This document shows, in pieces, positions 2,239 to 64,000 of a DNA stretch of 64,000 nucleotides. The translations under genes and the position numbers were made by a program. Each line of letters starts with the position of its first letter. Positions within the stretch are counted from its first letter, which is position 1. This stretch comes from Anthoceros angustus (taxonomy: Eukaryota; Plantae; Anthocerotophyta). Under the pieces are notes generated by a model. It had not been told where the DNA came from. It searched no databases and saw nothing but the letters and a program-made list of their open reading frames with translations. The DNA lies in contig MU008192.1 of assembly GCA_010909165.1 (NCBI GenBank), forward strand, positions 372,001 to 436,000. Direction: 5' to 3'.

Positions 2239-2968
2239 TTTCCCCTGCTCACGCGCACTCCGATACTCTCTAGGAAATGCCTCGAGGGACCAGTGTGACT
2301 CGGGTTCAAATGCCGAGGTCCGCTATTCGGAATCAGAGATGCGGATGTCTGGACTCTGAACTCCACTCAAGAAATGCAATAGGAATTAGGTGATAACTAT
2401 TCTTAATTTAAGTCTTCCAACAGGACGGAGTGAGCTTAAGTATATTACCACCACGACTTAAGCGAATCTAATGAACGAATTTTTTGTAATTTAAATATAT
2501 AAATATTTTATTTTAATCTTTTTTATCATGCAAAGATTAAATTATCTTATACTTTAGATTCCTTTTATTGATAAAAACTTTACTTATATTCTAATACAAA
2601 AAATAATATTAATGATCAATAGGTTGTTCATCTTTTTAATTGTACGAGTTTATAAATGGTGATAACTTTTATTTTCTTATATGTTAGGTTCACATATAAA
2701 TTCACTTCTCTTGAAAAGTAATTAATTATATTCATATAAGTGTTGGATGTTATTGTGTTATAGAAACTTATATAGTTTCAAATTAAGATTAAATTTAATT
2801 TTGATTTGTACCATTAACTACTCTTCATCTTATATGATGGTTCAACATGCAATCTATCTAGACATAATATTCTTTTATACATATATGCAAGTTGTTTTGA
2901 TTTGAAAATTGTGAGACTTATATTGTTGGTTTTATGTATAGAAATAAAATATATATTGCATTAGAAAT

Positions 2969-3400
2969 ATGGAACGACTTGAAAGAGAATCCATCATCAT
3001 CATAATATGTATGGTATTTACATGCAAAAATCTTGTACTTGCGCAACGAGAAGCAAATGTGACGGAGGTTGTACCAGCAGTTTGTGGTCCTCAATTTCTT
3101 AACGACCCAGGAAGTTTTGACTTAAAGTCTCTTGAAATTTCTTTATCATATCTTGCCAGCGATGGATCCACCCAATTTCCCGATGGATTGCCATATTCTG
3201 AACACATAGAAAAGATCGGTTATACAGGGACTGTTACGTGTTTCGAGTCGGAGATAACTATGACATCTCAAGAACAATGTCTTGATTGTTTAATGTATCT
3301 TGCTAAAACCATTGTACAGAAATGTTACCGTGCTCGTTCAGGCACACTGCATGTTGTAGACTGTTATCTTGCTTATGCCTACAATTCTAGTACATTCTGA
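2969..3400 (+). CDS. Single-domain Gnk2-homologous (DUF26 / ginkbilobin-2-like) secreted cysteine-rich protein
   Basis: Intronless 143-aa ORF with a hydrophobic N-terminus (IIIIICMVFTC...VLA). Cys pattern VC...TC-x12-C-x2-C...KC..ARSG...DCYLAY resembles the Gnk2 fold (canonical C-x8-C-x2-C). Confidence 0.72.
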   Translation: MERLERESIIIIICMVFTCKNLVLAQREANVTEVVPAVCGPQFLNDPGSFDLKSLEISLSYLASDGSTQFPDGLPYSEHIEKIGYTGTVTCFESEITMTSQEQCLDCLMYLAKTIVQKCYRARSGTLHVVDCYLAYAYNSSTF

Positions 3401-4722: not shown

Positions 4723-6159
4723 TCATTGTCCTCTGGCGTCTCCTCGAGCGCTTGGTTTGGTGGCAGCTAGGAAGATGGATATCCTACTGGTGAGCACAAA
4801 CCCAGCTACTCCTGCTGCCACGAGGGAGTACTGCGGAGTGACAGCATCTCCGGGACTCCACACCATCCTTGCTAGTACCAGAGTGACCATGGCAACCAGA
4901 GTCAACCGGGTCAGAGGAGATGAAAGGACATTGGTGACTAGGAAGGAGGTCTTGCTGGTTGCCGAGTCTGAAGATGCTGCCATGTGATCAACCACCTTCT
5001 GTAACAAGAGGAGGTGTAGAATTGCCCCCGCTCCTCCAATAGCGAAACTCTCAGCTACTGGCATCGACTCCACAGAAACAAGCGAAACAGTCCCTAAAGC
5101 TACTAGGAGTGCAGAGGTGCCTAGCAGGGAAGTTTTGAGAGCTTTATACTCCTCCATGCCTGCCTCTCGAGCAGCTACAGAGAACTCTTGACCCTGAGCA
5201 AACTTTTCACTGTGAGGCCAGAGTGCTTTCAGCCCAAGACCATCCTCGAAACCACGTACCGAATAAGGTGCTAACTCCACTGCGGTGGTGTCGCCAAGCA
5301 GGCAATCCTTGTTCTCCGCAAACATGTGCACCACACCTGTTAGGGTTTCTCCATCAGAAAGTGAGGAGACTGCCAACGGAAACCCGAGCCTGTGGATTGT
5401 CTGCGAGTTGGATTGGTCATGAGGAATCACCGCCACAACTGCCCGCTCCATCCTCCACGTCCCTGCTCAGTCATGAAACACCATGGCCAACATGAGACAA
5501 GCTCAAGCGGTAACATGACAGGGACGGGGATTAGAGACGAAAATGGCACCTGCTTCTGGTGCGATCCATATTGCACTCAGCCGCCCCAGATCCGCTCCAT
5601 GCAGCTTGATCACGTCCTGAGATCCCGTCTGGAAGAAACCGCTGTCTTTTCCAGAACAGGGGCACGGTACTCTTCGCAATAGAGCTTTGCCATTTTCTCC
5701 AATTAAGGAGATGATGACACCGGCATCAGGCTCCGACAGGCCAGATCCGTTATCCTTGCTGGTGATCAACTGAACAAGGTATAAAGCTCCAGATTCGGGG
5801 GCATCTTGCACCGGCTGAAAACCATCAGCGCGATCTCGGAAGCCGACATCATCTCCGTTGCTTGGCAAAAGCCACAAGGGTTCAACGAACCGCTTCTGCA
5901 AGCCATGCGTCATGCACAACCTTGGCCGAGGTCAGTAGCTGCTTGCTAGGTCCCAAGTGCTGATCATGATGCGCTTGTGAATCCAATTAGCTACCTTGGA
6001 CAAACATAGGACAGGCCCTCTTTGCAAATGCCTGGACAGCCACACTCTGCATCGCTCGGCTCCCTGTTCTTCCAGCCCCGTCACTCGCGGCGGGAAAGCC
6101 ACTCGAATCCTAGAGACAGCTTCTACATGCAACCCGCGGCAGCTCAGCAGGGAATCCAT
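4723..6159 (-). CDS. Conserved uncharacterised plant protein: putative transit peptide, PLAT/LH2-like domain and C-terminal membrane helices (~416 aa, 3 exons)
   Basis: Exons 6159-5995, 5895-5550 and 5462-4723 join in frame at GT-AG junctions (...APEAG|TWRMERAVV). PLAT-like segment YLVQLITSKDNGSGLSEPDAGVIISLIGENG...FQTGSQD...LGRLSAIWIAPE; hydrophobic C-terminal stretches. Confidence 0.82.
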
Positions 6160-10692: not shown

Positions 10693-12868
10693 ATGAGGAT
10701 GACTGCCAGGATGACGACGGTGCGGTGGCTGGCTTGGAGTTTGGCTTTGCTTGTGGTGCAATGCGCGTCAGGAGCTCCGCTCAAGACCCCCGACTTCGCG
10801 CAATGCCGGAACATCACGCTGAAGCTCACGCACAGCAACTACCGGTGTTGCCCGCCCGTGCCCCGATCCGTGAAGCCTTTCCAGTACCAGACTGACCTGC
10901 CGGTGCGGGTGAGGCGCCCCATCCACACCCTGGTGAACGACACGGAGTACTGGGACAAGTACAACCGGGCCTATGCTGCTCTGCGGGCGCTGCCGGATGA
11001 CGACCCCAGGACGCACAACATGCAGGCCTGGATGCACTGCGCGTACTGCAACAACGCGCTCATCCAGCGGGACGTGGCTCCGGACACCGTGCTGCTCATC
11101 CACAAGTCCTGGTTGTTCCTGCCCTGGCACCGCTGGTATGTCTACTTCCATGAGCGGATCCTGGCCAAGCTCATAGACGACGATACCTTTGCCTTGCCCT
11201 TCTGGAACTTCGACAACCAGACCGCCGCCGAGGGACACCACCGCGCCAACCGCTTCCCCTTGCAGTATACTGAGTGGGGTGCCCTGGGGGATCCCCTGCG
11301 GAGCAAGTTCCACATGCCGCCGCACACAATCGATATCCCCTTCGACCTCATCGTGGATTCTGGTCAGTCTTGAAAAACGTCGTTGCGAACAAGGAGTGGA
11401 TTGACAGCACATGTCGTTCTTGTGGATCACTGTGCTTGTTGTTTGTGTGCGATCTGAGATTTGCGTTTCGGGAAATTCAGGAGGGGAGCAGAGGCCAGAC
11501 TGTGGTTGTGTGTGATGTGAACTTTGCATCTTGGAGTCTGATGGTTTGCAGCAATTTATGTCATAGTGCATTTGCAGTCTGATCTGAGCTTGCCTACTTC
11601 GCCATCCCAGACGGAGGGATTGCAGCAATTTTAGGAGTGGAATGGATATCGAATTGGTCCAACCTGACGTCCTCTACTCTTGGTGTATGATTGTTGCAGG
11701 GGACTCTCCTTACACTCAAACGGAGCTGGAGGAGCGCAACAGAATTAGCATGAACAGGAACGTCTATCTTTCAACTGTTCCGCAAACCTTCTTCGGCCAC
11801 AAATTTGTGGAGGGGACGCCGGAGGCGCCTGGAGGCGGCTCAATTGAGTACATCCCGCACAACAGCATTCACGACTGGGTGGCGGATCTGACGTCTCCCG
11901 ACCACGAGAACATGGGGAATTTCTATTCCGCCGCTCGCGACCCGGTGTTCTACGGATTGCACTGCAATTTGGACAGGCTGTGGACTGTGTGGAATAATCT
12001 TCCTGGTGGCCGGCGCCAGAACCCCACGGAAACGGATTGGCTGGACACGGAGTTCATCTTCTTTGACGAGAACGGCGACGCGGTGGTGGTGAACGTCTCT
12101 GGCAGCCAGGAGACGGAGAGATTGCGGTACAGATACGAGGAGGTGGAGAATTCCTGGGCCAACTATTTCCCGCTGTCGCAGGGCTCCAACATTCTCCAAG
12201 CCGCGGCCAGGGCGCAGCAGCAGCGGCAGCAGTCCAAGATCGGTGCGTTGGTGAGCAGTGTCCTGCCGTCCTGGGCCAGCGAGTGGTGGAGGAGGAACGC
12301 TGCACCTGTTTGGAGTATTCTGGAGGAAGGCGCTGCGACAGAGACTGACGGCGACTGGGCAGTGAAACATTTGGCGGGAATTCCGCTCATGGGGCCCGCC
12401 TCCACGCCCGGCCAGAGTCCGGTCACCATCGGCGGGGAGCCGTTTCACTTCCGCGTTAGTAGGCCCGTGAAGTCCCTCCTCAGGCGGGGCGCGGAGGCAG
12501 CGGGGCTGGTGCCGGTGGCGGAGGAGGTGCTGGAGATTGAGGGGCTCGTCACCCCGATGATGAAGACCAACATCTTCGACATCTTCATCAACCTCCCGGA
12601 AGCCGACAGCAGCACGCCGATCACCATCGCCGAGTACGCAGGAACGTTTTACGAAATTCCCCACACTTCCGCTGCCATCAAGCCCAACGGCGAAGTGGAG
12701 CACCAGGACTGGCGCAATCAGAACTTCCGGTTAGCCATCAGTGGAGTCCTCGCTCAAATCGGCGCCTCCGACTCCAGCACCGAGCCCTTGGTAGTTAGCA
12801 TCATCCCAAGGGGTCCTGACAAGATGGAGCCGATGTTCATCACCGGCGTCACTGTCTTGCATTTGTAA
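10693..12868 (+). CDS. PPO: Polyphenol oxidase / tyrosinase-type type-3 copper protein with a secretory signal peptide, 2 exons, ~612 aa
   Basis: Exons 10693-11362 and 11700-12868, with a phase-1 GT-AG intron. CuA HCAYC...IHKSWLFLPWHRWY; CuB EYIPHNSIHDW...NMGNFYSAARDPVFYGLHCNLDRLW; DWL motif; C-terminal EYAGTF domain. The N-terminus WLAWSLALLVVQCASGA is signal-peptide-like. Confidence 0.96.
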
Positions 12869-58529: not shown

Positions 58530-60360
58530 TGACATGACAGCATGGCCTCAGAGGATGTGGTGACATGGAATGCGGTGATTGCTGGTATGCATAGCTGGAT
58601 GACGTTGTGGTGGGCAACTGCCTGGTGGGTCATGTATGCGAAATGTGGTGAACTGGAAGATGGAAGCCAGGTTTTTGACAGCATGGCCACTAAGGATGTG
58701 GTGACATGGAATGCCCTGATTGCTGGGTATGCACTGCAAGGACTGGGGCAAGAGGTTCTTGTTGTGTGTAGACAAATGGAGAATGCGGGCCTCATTTTGG
58801 CTGACGATGCTTTGTTTTGCTTGCCTTCTGAAGGCCTGTGGAAGCACTGGTGCCATACAGAAGGGCATGCGACTGCATTCATAGATTGTCGAAACTGGAC
58901 TGCTGGAAAACGTAGCGGTGGGCGCCTGCCTGGTGGACATGTGTGCGCAATGTGGTGAACTGGAAGATGCAGCCCAGGTTTTTGACAGCCTGGCCACAAA
59001 GAAGGTGGTGACACGGACCACCCTGATTGCTGGGTATGCACAGCAAGGACTGGGGCAACAGGCGCTTGTTGTGTATGGACAAATGGAGGAGGCAGGCCTC
59101 ATTCTGGCCGACGATGTTGCTGTTGCTGGCCTTCTGAAGGCCTGTGCGAGCACTGGTGCCTTACACAGGGGCAGGCAGCTGCACGCACAGATTGTCGAAA
59201 GAAGACTGGTGGATGACCTAGTGCTGGGCAACTGCCTGGTGGATATGTATGCAAAACATGCTGAACTGGACGATGCACGGCAGGTTTTTGACAGCTTGGC
59301 CACAGAAGGATGTGGTGACGTGGACGGCCCTCGTTGCTGGGTATGCACAGGAAGGGGCAGTCAAGAGGCGCTTGTCGTGTATGGACAAATGGAGCTGATT
59401 TTGGCTGACCATGTTACTTGTGCTTGCCTTCCCTGTGCAGGCACTGGTGCCCTACAGAAGGGCAGGCAGCTGCACTCACAGATTGTCAAAAGAGGACTGG
59501 GAACTGCCTGGTGGACATGTATACAAAATGTGATGAACTGGAAGATGCACGCCAGGTTTCTGACAGCATGGCCGCAAAGGATGTGGTGACATGGACCGCC
59601 TTGATATCTGGGTTTTGTGCTTGTGATGAAGGCCACAAGGCACTAGCTTGTTCAGCCTGATGGTGCTACTTTTACTTGCCTTCTAGTAGCATGGAGTCGT
59701 GAGGGACTGGTGAATGAGGGTCGCAAGCACTTTGATTCCGCGGCTGAACAGTATAGCATAAACCTACTCTTCAGCACTACAATTGCTTAATTGATCTGCT
59801 TGGGTGTGCTGTCCATTAGATGAGGCAGAGAAGATGCGATTATCATGTGAGGGCCAAGGTGATGTTGTGGGGTTGACGCCTTTGTCGAATGCCTGCAAAA
59901 GTCACGGGGATATAGTGAGGGCGATATAGTGTTTTGAAAGCATTGTCAAAGCTGGACCCCCAGGAGGCGCCTGCATATGTGCTCATGCAGATGCAGGTAG
60001 ATGGATCAATGTCGATAGGATTGAAACACTCAGAAGGTTAGCAAGAGCTAACAAGAAACCTTCAGTGACGATCATTGAGGTGAAGGAGGTACATAGATTT
60101 TTGGTGGGAGAAAGGAGAGGGGATATTGCGCTTGAGGTAGAGAGCACCAACTGATGTCAAGCAAGAAGGAGCTCTGGTCTTTTGGACACTCTGAGTGGGA
60201 CACCTTTGGTGGTAACGAAGAATCTACGTATGTGCAGCGACTGTCATAGTTTTACAGAAATAATATCAAGGCTTGAACAGAGAGAGATTGTTGCAAGGGA
60301 TGGGGACCGTGTGTTTCGATTTGCAAATGGTTGTTGCAGCTGTAAGGATCGAGCTTGTGA
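58530..60360 (+). pseudogene. PLS-class PPR-E-DYW pseudogene, KP-type DYW domain
   Basis: Repeated DVVTWNALIAGYA / LLKACASTGAL / CLVDMYAKCGEL motifs; HYNCLIDLLG; KKPSVTIIEV (60053-); KNLRMCSDCH; REIVARD..F.NGCCSCKDR. Many stops and frameshifts; the HxE segment is missing. Confidence 0.9.
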
Positions 60361-61196: not shown

Positions 61197-61383
61197 AGAT
61201 ACTGCGCATCTATTTGACATTGAAATAGATGCAACTTCAGGTGATACTAACCCCAGTCGAGATACTGTGCATCTATTTGACGCGGAAATAGATGCAACTT
61301 CACGTATACCAACCCCAATCGAGATACTGTGCATCTATTTGACATTGACATAGATGCAACTTCAGGTAATAACAACCCCAGTC
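61197..61383. repeat. 3 x 62-63-bp tandem repeat, each containing an inverted repeat (hairpin)
   Basis: Core gcatctattt-N7-aaatagatgc (third copy has one mismatch) in units starting ~61198, 61261 and 61323. Confidence 0.85.
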
Positions 61384-61596
61384 GTCCATCTGCAAACGGG
61401 AGCAAGGGCTTTCATGCCCACTCATACAGCTCACATTTATTAGTCCCAAAGAGTGTGGCATAGCTCTGGTTTTCAAAACCATCTCATTTTCAAACAACAC
61501 CACTGGGTTTCGAGCAGGAGCCACATGTTCGGCTGGTTGACTGCCAGCTCGGTCGATGCGCTCGCTTCACGCCGCGGGAGAAAGGATGGGATTATG

Positions 61597-61703
61597 TGGA
61601 GGTTTGCGGAATTTTGAGGATCATGTGTGCACGGAGTTTGGAGGGGTTTGGAGGTTTGCGGAATTTTGAGGATCATGTGTGCACGGAGTTTGGAGGGGTT
61701 TGG
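61597..61703. repeat. ~52-bp direct tandem duplication
   Basis: tggaggtttgcggaattttgaggatcatgtgtgcacggagtttggaggggtt occurs twice. Confidence 0.85.
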
Positions 61704-61974
61704 TTTGCTGCATGGAGTTTCTTCGCATATTCTCGAGAGCATTATGGGAATCAGAAATCAAGTAAAAAGAAAAAGTGCCAAATGTGGATTGAGAAACTAA
61801 ATCTCACACTCTAAAGTCGGTGGGCAGCAAACCACACCTAAAGGCAAGCTACACCTCCATGGAAACTACGCCTAGAGGCAAACTGTCGCATATTCTACAA
61901 AACTTATTTTCCATGTCTCCATCGTTATCTTAGGAATATAAGTATTGTGGATATAGGTGTTATACATTATAATT

Positions 61975-63503
61975 TTATCTACGCCTCACCATTTCACGAG
62001 CCTCAATTTCATCTAATATTGATTCGGACAGTGGCTCCCAATTGATTTCTTGGCTGATCCAGTCAGTGATATCATTATAACCTATTTCACATTCATATAA
62101 TTAGTCAATATGATTTATAACTAAATATAATATTAAATTATCAAAATTTATTTCAAATAATTAGTTATTATAGTTTATAGATTACATTAAAAGTAGCATC
62201 TAATGATTTACCTTCTTGAAATAAAATAAATTCGAAGATATCCCTAAGGGAATGACAAAAGATGACAAAATCACATTTCAGGTTCTCACAACTATTTATA
62301 GCTCGATTTATTATCTGAATTATTAGAACATCGGGATGGAAATATTAGTAGAAGGTGTTACCATTAGAGTATGAAGCTCCATTAGAAAGACAAAATACGA
62401 ACCTCAATTTCATGTTCATTTCGATCTTGACCAAGAGCATTTTGCAAAAGAATTACGATTTGACTTTTCAATTGGTTTGCATCTGACCATCTGCACAAAA
62501 ATTGTCGTTCATATGGATGTTTATGTTGCTAGAGACATAATTTTTCTCTATATTCTACTTCTTTGACATACCCATTTGATTCGGTGAGGTTCTCTGATTT
62601 ACCACATTCCATGATGTATAGCTGCAAAAGAATATGATGAAAAACCATTAGAATTTTAGAAGAGAAATGAGTTGTAAGAAACAATGTCTTTCAAGGTTTG
62701 CTAGCCAATTTTTTTTGTCTAACATGGGATTTGAGCAATTGCTTGTGGATATAACACACGAATAGGAAGAATTTTCCAAATAACACACGAAGAGGAAGGA
62801 TTTTCCAAGGATTGTTGTTTTCATGTTCATATAGTATAGTACCAGTGAAAGTAAAATGACTATACCAACCTGAGCTTCTAAATTTTCTTTAACATTTTCT
62901 CTAGAAGCCATTATGAAATTCTCGAGTAGTAAATTTCCATGATTGAGATGCATCATATGCATGCTCTCCATTATGTTGATCTATGAGACACACACATGAA
63001 GATAAGTGGGCCATGGATGAGGCTAGTTTGACGATACAATATTGATACGCAATGTAGATAAAGAGGTACTATACCATTTGAATTACGAAGAAAAAAATTG
63101 TCTTCAAAGATAACCTATTATTAAGATCTCCAAGGTTGCTTGTCTCCACAACTTCTAATATAATAACATCCAGGGTATTTTCCTTGAACAAAACGTTAGC
63201 GTGAGCTCTCGAATGTGGAATACCAGGGCCTCCTCTAAGATGATGATAGAACCATTTTTCTTTTATGAAATATTCATAATTATTAATGATTCTAATTGTG
63301 ACTATCTTTTGATCTTTGATATCTAGTCCTGAAAATAAGCGTAATTTTAGAATAATATTTTAAAATAATTTAAATAGATTATGAACTGTAGAAGTAATAT
63401 TAACTTACAACTCACCCATGTGCGTAGTTCCAAATTGTCCTTCCCGAATGCATTTCCCAATTCCAAAGCTTCTATCCTCACACACGATCACCCCATTATC
63501 CAT
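61975..63503 (-). CDS. Highly divergent casein kinase 1-derived predicted pseudokinase, 7 exons, ~266 aa
   Basis: Exons 63503-63416, 63328-63075, 62980-62870, 62621-62572, 62490-62403, 62314-62212 and 62081-61975 join with GT-AG introns into one stop-free 801-nt frame. It aligns to CK1 at LRGGPGIP, LSLKTIFFFVIQM|IN, ENFIM, Q|LYIMECG and LFQEG|YNDITDW. Confidence 0.8.
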
Positions 63504-63924
63504 ATCTCCACACTAACACAAGATCTAACTAGATCCTAGTATTAGTAAAAACGTCCATATTGATATCAATTGGGCAGAAGTAAGACTTGACCAAGCAAGC
63601 TGGTTACTCTTGCTTTGAGCACAAGATCGATGGCTTGCGGTATCTTACACCTTGCATCTTGTGAGGAAGCTCGTGTCTGCCATAAAAATCTCTTCTCATG
63701 CTTCTACCGCAAACCTGGCTGAAACCATCATCTCTATATATACCCCTGAAAATATCACGATTGGGTTCGTGGAGAAGTCTGAGCGTCGTATAGGCCTCAA
63801 AAGCCTTCAACCACTTCGGCTTCGGATTCCATAGGGCCATCCAAAATATTATTGCATGGCGTTGCTGCTTCGGTTGTGCGCACTCCTCCGCTTTCCCTTA
63901 CGCAAGCCCAAAGGAATGAGTGGC

Positions 63925-64000
63925 TACTCAAGGGCGGGAATCCTGCAGTACTCAAGGGTGGGAATCCTGCAGTACTCAAGGGCGGGAATCCTGCAGTACT
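63925..64000. repeat. 24-bp tandem repeat running off the window end
   Basis: tactcaagggcgggaatcctgcag, three or more copies. Confidence 0.9.

Follow-up and report, generated by a model that had tools for sequence, protein, structure and literature searches.

The locus considered here lies near one end of the window, by which we mean the whole 64-kb stretch of Anthoceros angustus DNA that was analysed, and it raises the following question: is a far-diverged, AT-rich frame with CK1 signatures a gene that the hornwort maintains, and from what did it descend? A reading made from the sequence alone had described a hidden but intact pseudokinase derived from CK1, with its catalytic motifs replaced and its activation segment deleted. 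We examined the gene model and its transcripts, the descent of the gene, the residues and exons that have been lost, and the explanations that compete with that of a maintained gene.

Gene model, transcripts and surroundings

The CK1-like gene occupies positions 63503-61975 of the minus strand and comprises seven exons separated by six GT..AG introns of 81-248 nt (Table 1). These are the same seven exons that the sequence-only reading had joined by canonical splicing into a stop-free frame of 266 aa. Their lengths sum to a coding sequence of 801 nt, corresponding to 266 codons and a TAA, and the per-exon peptides together with three split Gly codons give the 266 residues. As had also been stated, the list of open reading frames contains exon 3 alone, extended into the adjoining intron (62648-62971, 107 aa). 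Over the 264 codons that lie entirely within exons, the coding frame is free of internal stops, whereas the two remaining frames of the same exons exhibit 19 and 29, and at these off-frame stop rates the chance of an open frame is P ~2e-9 to 3e-14. The codon-position composition is strongly periodic, with a GC1 of 0.44, a GC2 of 0.27 and a GC3 of 0.33. The longest intron, intron 3, carries a 29-nt tandem duplication (62751-62808, 93% identical). No second copy of the gene is present within the 64-kb window.

Table 1. Exons and introns of the CK1-like gene, with positions in the window.
Feature	Position	Strand	Length (nt)	Phase and boundaries	Content or counterpart
Exon 1	63416-63503	-	88	ATG at 63503; ends in phase 1	N-terminus and degenerate Gly-loop (REGQFG)
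Intron 1	63329-63415	-	87	GT..AG; phase 1	Place and phase of land-plant CK1 intron 1
Exon 2	63075-63328	-	254	Ends QM	beta-3 (VTIR), alpha-C, GGPGIP, LSLKT
Exon 3	62870-62980	-	111	Phase 0 to 0	alpha-E and catalytic loop HGNLLLENF
Exon 4	62572-62621	-	50	Ends in phase 2	ECG at the DFG place
Intron 4	62491-62571	-	81		At the site of ancestral introns 6-8 and exons 7+8
Exon 5	62403-62490	-	88	Phase 2 to 0; ends IE	
Intron 5	62315-62402	-	88	GT..AG; phase 0	Plant intron 9
Exon 6	62212-62314	-	103	Phase 0 to 1; ends QEG	
Intron 6	62082-62211	-	130	GT..AG; phase 1	Plant intron 10
Exon 7	61975-62081	-	107	TAA at 61975-61977	DW motif, then short charged tail

The CK1-like locus is transcribed and spliced. 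One public run, X1, covers part of the stretch, and its RNA nature was in itself a guess. Two of its contigs are identical to the window and sit on exons of the gene, and they omit introns 1, 5 and 6 at the exact bases predicted, with zero depth inside these introns. As introns are omitted exactly at their GT..AG bases, run X1 appears to hold processed RNA. The 3' end of exon 1 is joined to exon 2, of which positions 63119-63327 lie within the contig, and exon 5 is joined to exon 6, the shorter arm of this junction spanning 89 letters. The omission of intron 6 was read at cut +2, and positions 62055-62079 of exon 7 are contained in the contig. The start of exon 6, for which the earlier reading had left dots, is fixed by the contig at 62314. 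With regard to the RNA check of six junctions that had been proposed, junctions 1, 5 and 6 are therefore spliced exactly as predicted, and the contigs reach neither exons 3 and 4 nor junctions 2-4. The depth of the contigs is low (3.4-4), and they show neither transcript ends nor an expression level.

The transcription unit forms an AT-rich island (~61900-63560) with 14-37% GC per 100 nt, between flanks of 45-60% GC. Within the gene, the exons have 35% GC and the introns, which are T-rich, 29%. Two readings of this island were rejected. CpG decay alone does not account for the AT-richness, as the CpG observed/expected ratio is 0.62 and the TG/CA excess is mild, less marked than in the flank. 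Capture by a transposon was set aside because neither terminal repeats nor inverted terminal repeats were found around the island.

Just downstream of the CK1-like gene, on the plus strand at 58918-60352, lies a remnant that comprises PPR repeats (Pfam, E 1.8e-14) and a DYW deaminase end (E 9.9e-17). The two parts are apparently read in separate frames and divided by stops, and the whole looks like a fragmented gene or a pseudogene. In this flank, the CpG observed/expected ratio is 0.47 and the TG/CA excess ~1.5. Tandem repeats flank the gene at 61197-61384, 61597-61700 and 63925-64000, with units of 63 nt in three copies, 52 nt in two identical copies and, at the end of the window, 24 nt in three copies. 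The window also contains ordinary plant genes, encoding a polyphenol oxidase with tyrosinase, DWL and KFDV domains (11642-12868), a four-EF-hand protein (29502-30296) and a CGL160-like ORF (4723-5451). At 2400-3400, a second, very AT-rich stretch (21-25% GC) leads into an ORF of 143 aa (2969-3400) whose N-terminus is hydrophobic and whose weak match to the Gnk2/DUF26 'Stress-antifung' domain stays below threshold (E 0.002). This ORF is possibly another AT-rich, diverged gene.

Descent from a land-plant CK1 gene

All searches were run with single exon peptides. In Pfam, no exon taken separately matched any family when E values as high as 10 were admitted, and Pkinase (PF00069) was accordingly not matched. 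In the PDB, phmmer with exons 1, 2, 3 and 6 gave no significant CK1 match. The best CK1-alpha match of exon 2 had an E of 1.2 and fell at the correct place, exon 1 matched the kinase domain of FAK at its Gly-loop (E 0.2), and exons 3 and 6 matched unrelated proteins, with no kinase among them. A word search with exon 2 returned a blank, and HMMER with the same exon against 1.84 billion representatives returned no CK1 and no match to itself; the two repeat proteins that it did match were judged spurious. In the ESM Atlas feature search, unnamed fungal clusters ranked on top and Pkinase clusters reached 0.93-0.94 with low shared-feature counts, which we take as a lead only. The AlphaFold model of exon 2 alone, computed without an alignment, was uninformative (pLDDT 49).

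No relatives of the gene were found in viral and metagenome contigs. One candidate (L012) proved to fit one of the search patterns by chance, on a contig of 63% GC that is probably bacterial. A literature search found no report of such a gene. The missing relatives were nevertheless rejected as a sign of novelty, since the EF-hand gene of the window also finds nothing above 54% identity, which indicates that the proteome of this hornwort and those of its close kin are absent from the database.

A directed approach gave a different result. A back-translated pattern of the catalytic loop led to CK1 ORFs in giant-virus MAG contigs, one of these viral ORFs was used to retrieve cellular CK1s, including those of a liverwort, a moss, a fern and an angiosperm, and a local profile built from 22 CK1s was searched against the seven exon peptides singly. 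Exon 2 aligned with this profile along its entire length, at hmm 29-112, with a score of 13.1 bits and an E of 1.4e-5 (Z=7), and exon 3 aligned with hmm 113-139, whose first position comes right after the end of exon 2. Exon 1 aligned through its Gly-loop (hmm 8-22), and exon 6 aligned weakly, at the expected place (hmm 252-258, FCHSL to YCRSL). Composition-preserving shuffles equalled or exceeded the real score in 0 of 3000 cases for exon 2 (maximum 5.4), 11 for exon 3, 80 for exon 1 and 126 for exon 6, each out of 3000. The check by HMMER/BLASTP that had been proposed at the outset, carried out exon by exon, was thus negative for the Pfam Pkinase family and positive for the directed CK1 profile with exon 2.

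When the exons were compared in a matrix with the exon pieces of the Marchantia CK1, significant values were observed on the diagonal only, and there for exons 1-4 only. The z values against the Marchantia counterparts were 4.2 for exon 1 (reached by 0 of 500 shuffles), 10.4 for exon 2, 5.4 for exon 3, whose counterpart is Marchantia exon 5, and 4.8 for exon 4, which was compared with Marchantia exon 6 (1 of 500). Exons 5, 6 and 7 showed no significant similarity to any Marchantia CK1 piece. The CK1 signatures GGPGIP, LSLKT and ENFIM are found at the aligned places and TGTARYAS is absent; QEG and DW are also found at exon ends, where they carry no statistical support. The identity to CK1 is ~31% over exons 1-4, with nothing recognisable in exons 5-7, and the CK1s of plants, animals and viruses share ~50% identity among themselves. 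Placement in a clade by sequence was abandoned, as the exons obtain similar scores with profiles of plant, bryophyte, animal/protist and viral CK1s. The directed exon-wise tests, and only these among the similarity searches, support a CK1 ancestry of the gene, and the profile match of exon 2 points to membership of the CK1/CKL family by descent.

The intron map is more specific in this respect. Exons were mapped exactly in three land-plant CK1 genes, those of Marchantia paleacea (L011), Ceratodon purpureus (L014) and Capsicum (L015), which have eleven kinase-domain introns in common, at residue/phase 25/1, 39/0, 62/1, 112/0, 144/0, 167/2, 188/1, 209/2, 238/0, 280/1 and 308/0. The hornwort introns 1 to 6 exhibit phases 1, 0, 0, 2, 0 and 1, and they match plant introns 1, 4, 5, 6/8, 9 and 10 in place or phase: all six by phase, and introns 1, 2 and 3 by exact aligned position as well. 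Intron 1 falls in the Gly codon past the Gly-loop (25/1), intron 2 follows the residue aligned to 112, and intron 3 precedes the residue aligned to 145. Intron 4 follows an exon end in phase 2 (plant 167/2), intron 5 follows IE (238/0) and intron 6 follows QEG (280/1). The places of plant CK1 introns that the sequence-only reading had given hold against these real liverwort, moss and pepper genes.

In Marchantia numbering, the introns of the Trichoplax CK1-alpha gene lie at 33/0, 68/2, 111/0, 190/2 and 242/0, none of which coincides exactly, and the giant-virus CK1s are uninterrupted ORFs. The intron map shows descent from a land-plant CKL gene by duplication at the DNA level, and the retained host introns exclude a retrocopy. 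The original claim of a CK1-derived kinase therefore stands as to descent from a plant CKL, and needs to be narrowed as to extent, since only exons 1-4, from the N-lobe to the DFG place, are recognisably CK1.

Catalytic residues and lost segments

The alignment with the CK1 profile shows the replacements that had been proposed in the Gly-loop (GSGSFG to REGQFG), at the VAIK Lys (to Arg) and in the HRD motif (to HGN). The change of DFG to ECG, in which Asp becomes Glu, was likewise recovered, in this case from exon 4 aligned pairwise. Within the catalytic loop, HRDIKPDNF has become HGNLLLENF in the profile alignment, so that Asp is replaced by Asn and the catalytic-loop Lys by Leu, and the Asn is kept. 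The retention of this Asn and of the alpha-C Glu, both seen in the profile alignment, had not been remarked on before. Several marks of the CK1 fold are also kept, namely the G and F of the Gly-loop, GGPGIP, LSLKT and NFIM, as are two His residues, that of alpha-E and that of the catalytic loop.

With regard to the features of an active kinase, the beta-3 Lys, the HRD Asp and the DFG Asp are Arg, Asn and Glu in the hornwort gene, and the activation segment with the P+1 loop is absent, as probably is alpha-F. A pseudokinase is a kinase fold that lacks one or more of the catalytic Lys, Asp and Asp, and all three are replaced in the hornwort gene. Judged by these residues, the predicted product cannot be a conventional phosphotransferase.

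Comparison with the ancestral exons shows how the gene has been shortened. Exon 2 corresponds to ancestral exons 2+3+4 (260 nt) fused without their introns, and exon 4 corresponds to ancestral exon 6 minus 21 nt, with the same end phase as at plant intron 6. About 42 residues are then missing, which equals ancestral exons 7+8 (62 + 64 = 126 nt, 42 codons). As these two exons enter and leave in phase 2, the reading frame survives their loss. The activation segment, the P+1 loop and helix alpha-F of CK1 all come from these two exons, and the absence of the TGTARYAS activation/P+1 segment, noticed in the sequence-only reading, is accounted for by these codons. Intron 4 is too short for relics of the two exons. 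By phase and length, exon 5 resembles ancestral exon 9 (85 nt); alternatively, it could be a fused and shortened remnant of ancestral exons 7-9. Its comparison with alpha-F gives 6 identities in 20 ungapped positions and a z of 0.9, which is weak. Exon 6 resembles ancestral exon 10 (127 nt, ending in REG) and is 24 nt shorter. In place of the long C-terminal tail of plant CK1, which is encoded from ancestral exon 12 onward, the gene has a short charged end.

Helix alpha-F, which is the core of the kinase C-lobe, was probably part of what is missing, and a C-lobe that lacks it is not expected to fold. As the alpha-F region is probably gone, the survival of any kinase fold is uncertain, and the label 'pseudokinase scaffold' may overstate what the putative product is. 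Pseudokinases are a well-known kind of protein. The gene is a truncated, lineage-specific, CK1-group pseudokinase-like gene.

A maintained gene and its alternatives

The explanation that we favour, with moderate confidence, is that of a transcribed, spliced and coding-looking CKL paralogue that is kept as a non-catalytic protein. That selection keeps the frame is suggested by a frame free of stops where the two alternatives contain 19 and 29, by the codon periodicity and by the six GT..AG pairs, all at an identity of ~31%; from the open frame, the splice sites and the periodicity, we infer that the protein would also be made. The gene is probably a non-enzymatic kinase relic rather than plain junk. 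Against a maintained gene stand the outcome of Pfam, PDB and the large libraries, none of which gave a significant CK1, the unrecognisable exons 5-7, and a contig depth of 3.4-4 from one run.

In the history that we propose, a land-plant CKL gene would have been copied in the hornwort nuclear genome, at the DNA level because the host introns are kept. The copy would then have diverged far, to ~31% identity in exons 1-4 and past recognition in exons 5-7, and would have become AT-rich, as seen in its exons. Its losses would comprise the plant introns 2 and 3, the C-terminal tail and, without a shift of frame, the 42 codons of ancestral exons 7+8. More tentatively, the retained N-lobe-like part may still bind, and might act as a partner, a competitor or a decoy of CK1 interactions; a scaffold, binding or decoy role is accordingly only putative.

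The most serious alternative, to which we give perhaps a minor share of the probability, is that of an expressed pseudogene, in which a duplicated CK1 decays freely, transcription and splicing persist, and the open frame serves no function. The replaced catalytic Lys, Asp and Asp, the two missing exons and tail, the unrecognisable C-terminal half and the low contig depth would all be expected of such a copy. So would its setting, with tandem repeats and the apparently fragmented PPR-DYW gene adjoining, and a composition that is AT-rich unlike that of the neighbouring genes; no relatives were found in protein libraries either, although these lack hornworts. However, at no more than ~31% identity and 35% GC, drift should have introduced many stops, and the coding frame contains none (P at most 1e-9). 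Furthermore, all six splice-site pairs are intact, at least three of them are used, and the codon-position composition is strongly periodic. The pattern of loss is also selective, as the fold-related CK1 motifs are kept and the catalytic motifs are lost.

It is very unlikely that the locus acts through its RNA only, as a spliced non-coding transcript in which the open frame is incidental. Low abundance and the absence of translation evidence agree with such a transcript, whereas the stop-free frame and the codon periodicity do not, and the divergence from CK1 is too large for base-pairing with CK1 mRNAs. Foreign origin, as a short CK1 derived from a giant virus or otherwise acquired horizontally, is largely refuted and scarcely credible. 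The six introns share place or phase with those of land-plant CK1, whereas no intron breaks the viral ORFs; every catalytic motif is intact in the viral proteins; and no close relative occurs among viral or metagenome contigs. In favour of such an origin, the giant-virus MAG CK1s are also AT-rich, short (257-308 aa) and devoid of a tail, exons 2 and 3 score similarly with the viral and the plant CK1 profile, and the transcription unit and the AT-rich island have the same extent.

Among known systems, the CK1-like gene is closest to the land-plant CKL genes (Marchantia paleacea P0096/L011, Ceratodon P0104 and Capsicum CKL3 P0046), with which it has intron place or phase in common at six sites. 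It also resembles them in exhibiting GGxGIP, LSLKT and NF(I/L)M, in the collinearity of exons 1-4 and in an N-terminus that begins just before the Gly-loop. Unlike these genes, it lacks the catalytic Lys, Asp and Asp, exons 7+8, the C-terminal tail and the plant introns 2 and 3; it is ~31% identical to them over exons 1-4, its exons have 35% GC, and none of these matches Pfam singly. The CK1s of the giant-virus MAGs (L001-L010) are similar in size and AT-richness, and they are tail-less, with nothing beyond the kinase domain. In contrast to the hornwort gene, they are intronless and catalytically intact, with GxGxFG, VAIK, HRDIKPDNF and DFG, and with the activation segment in most of them. They share ~50% identity with plant and animal CK1.

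The vertebrate protein VRK3 is a CK1-group pseudokinase with degraded ATP-binding and catalytic motifs, which is regarded as a scaffold and has kept a complete kinase fold. The hornwort protein would be comparable to VRK3 in that both derive from CK1-group kinases and exhibit degraded ATP-binding and catalytic motifs. VRK3, however, possesses alpha-F and the activation segment, where the hornwort protein lacks ~42 residues, and the two have no direct kinship.

A broader proposal is that hornworts possess a class of their own of AT-rich 'mini' versions of core regulatory enzymes that evolve fast, and that this gene is one of them. Such copies would be retained without catalysis, to bind, mislead or inhibit the pathways of their parents, and a conflict with viruses, symbionts or selfish elements may lie behind their retention. 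We regard this proposal as a doubtful, speculative extension of the maintained CKL paralogue.

Taken alone, evidence from one species gives the finding moderate significance. A CK1-derived pseudokinase that has lost two exons of the kinase core and is nevertheless open-framed and spliced is unusual, and it raises the question of whether half a kinase, consisting of an N-lobe and a remodelled remainder, can work as a protein. The gene is an orphan by standard searches, and its parent is betrayed by the intron map, which is a lesson for the annotation of 'orphan' genes.
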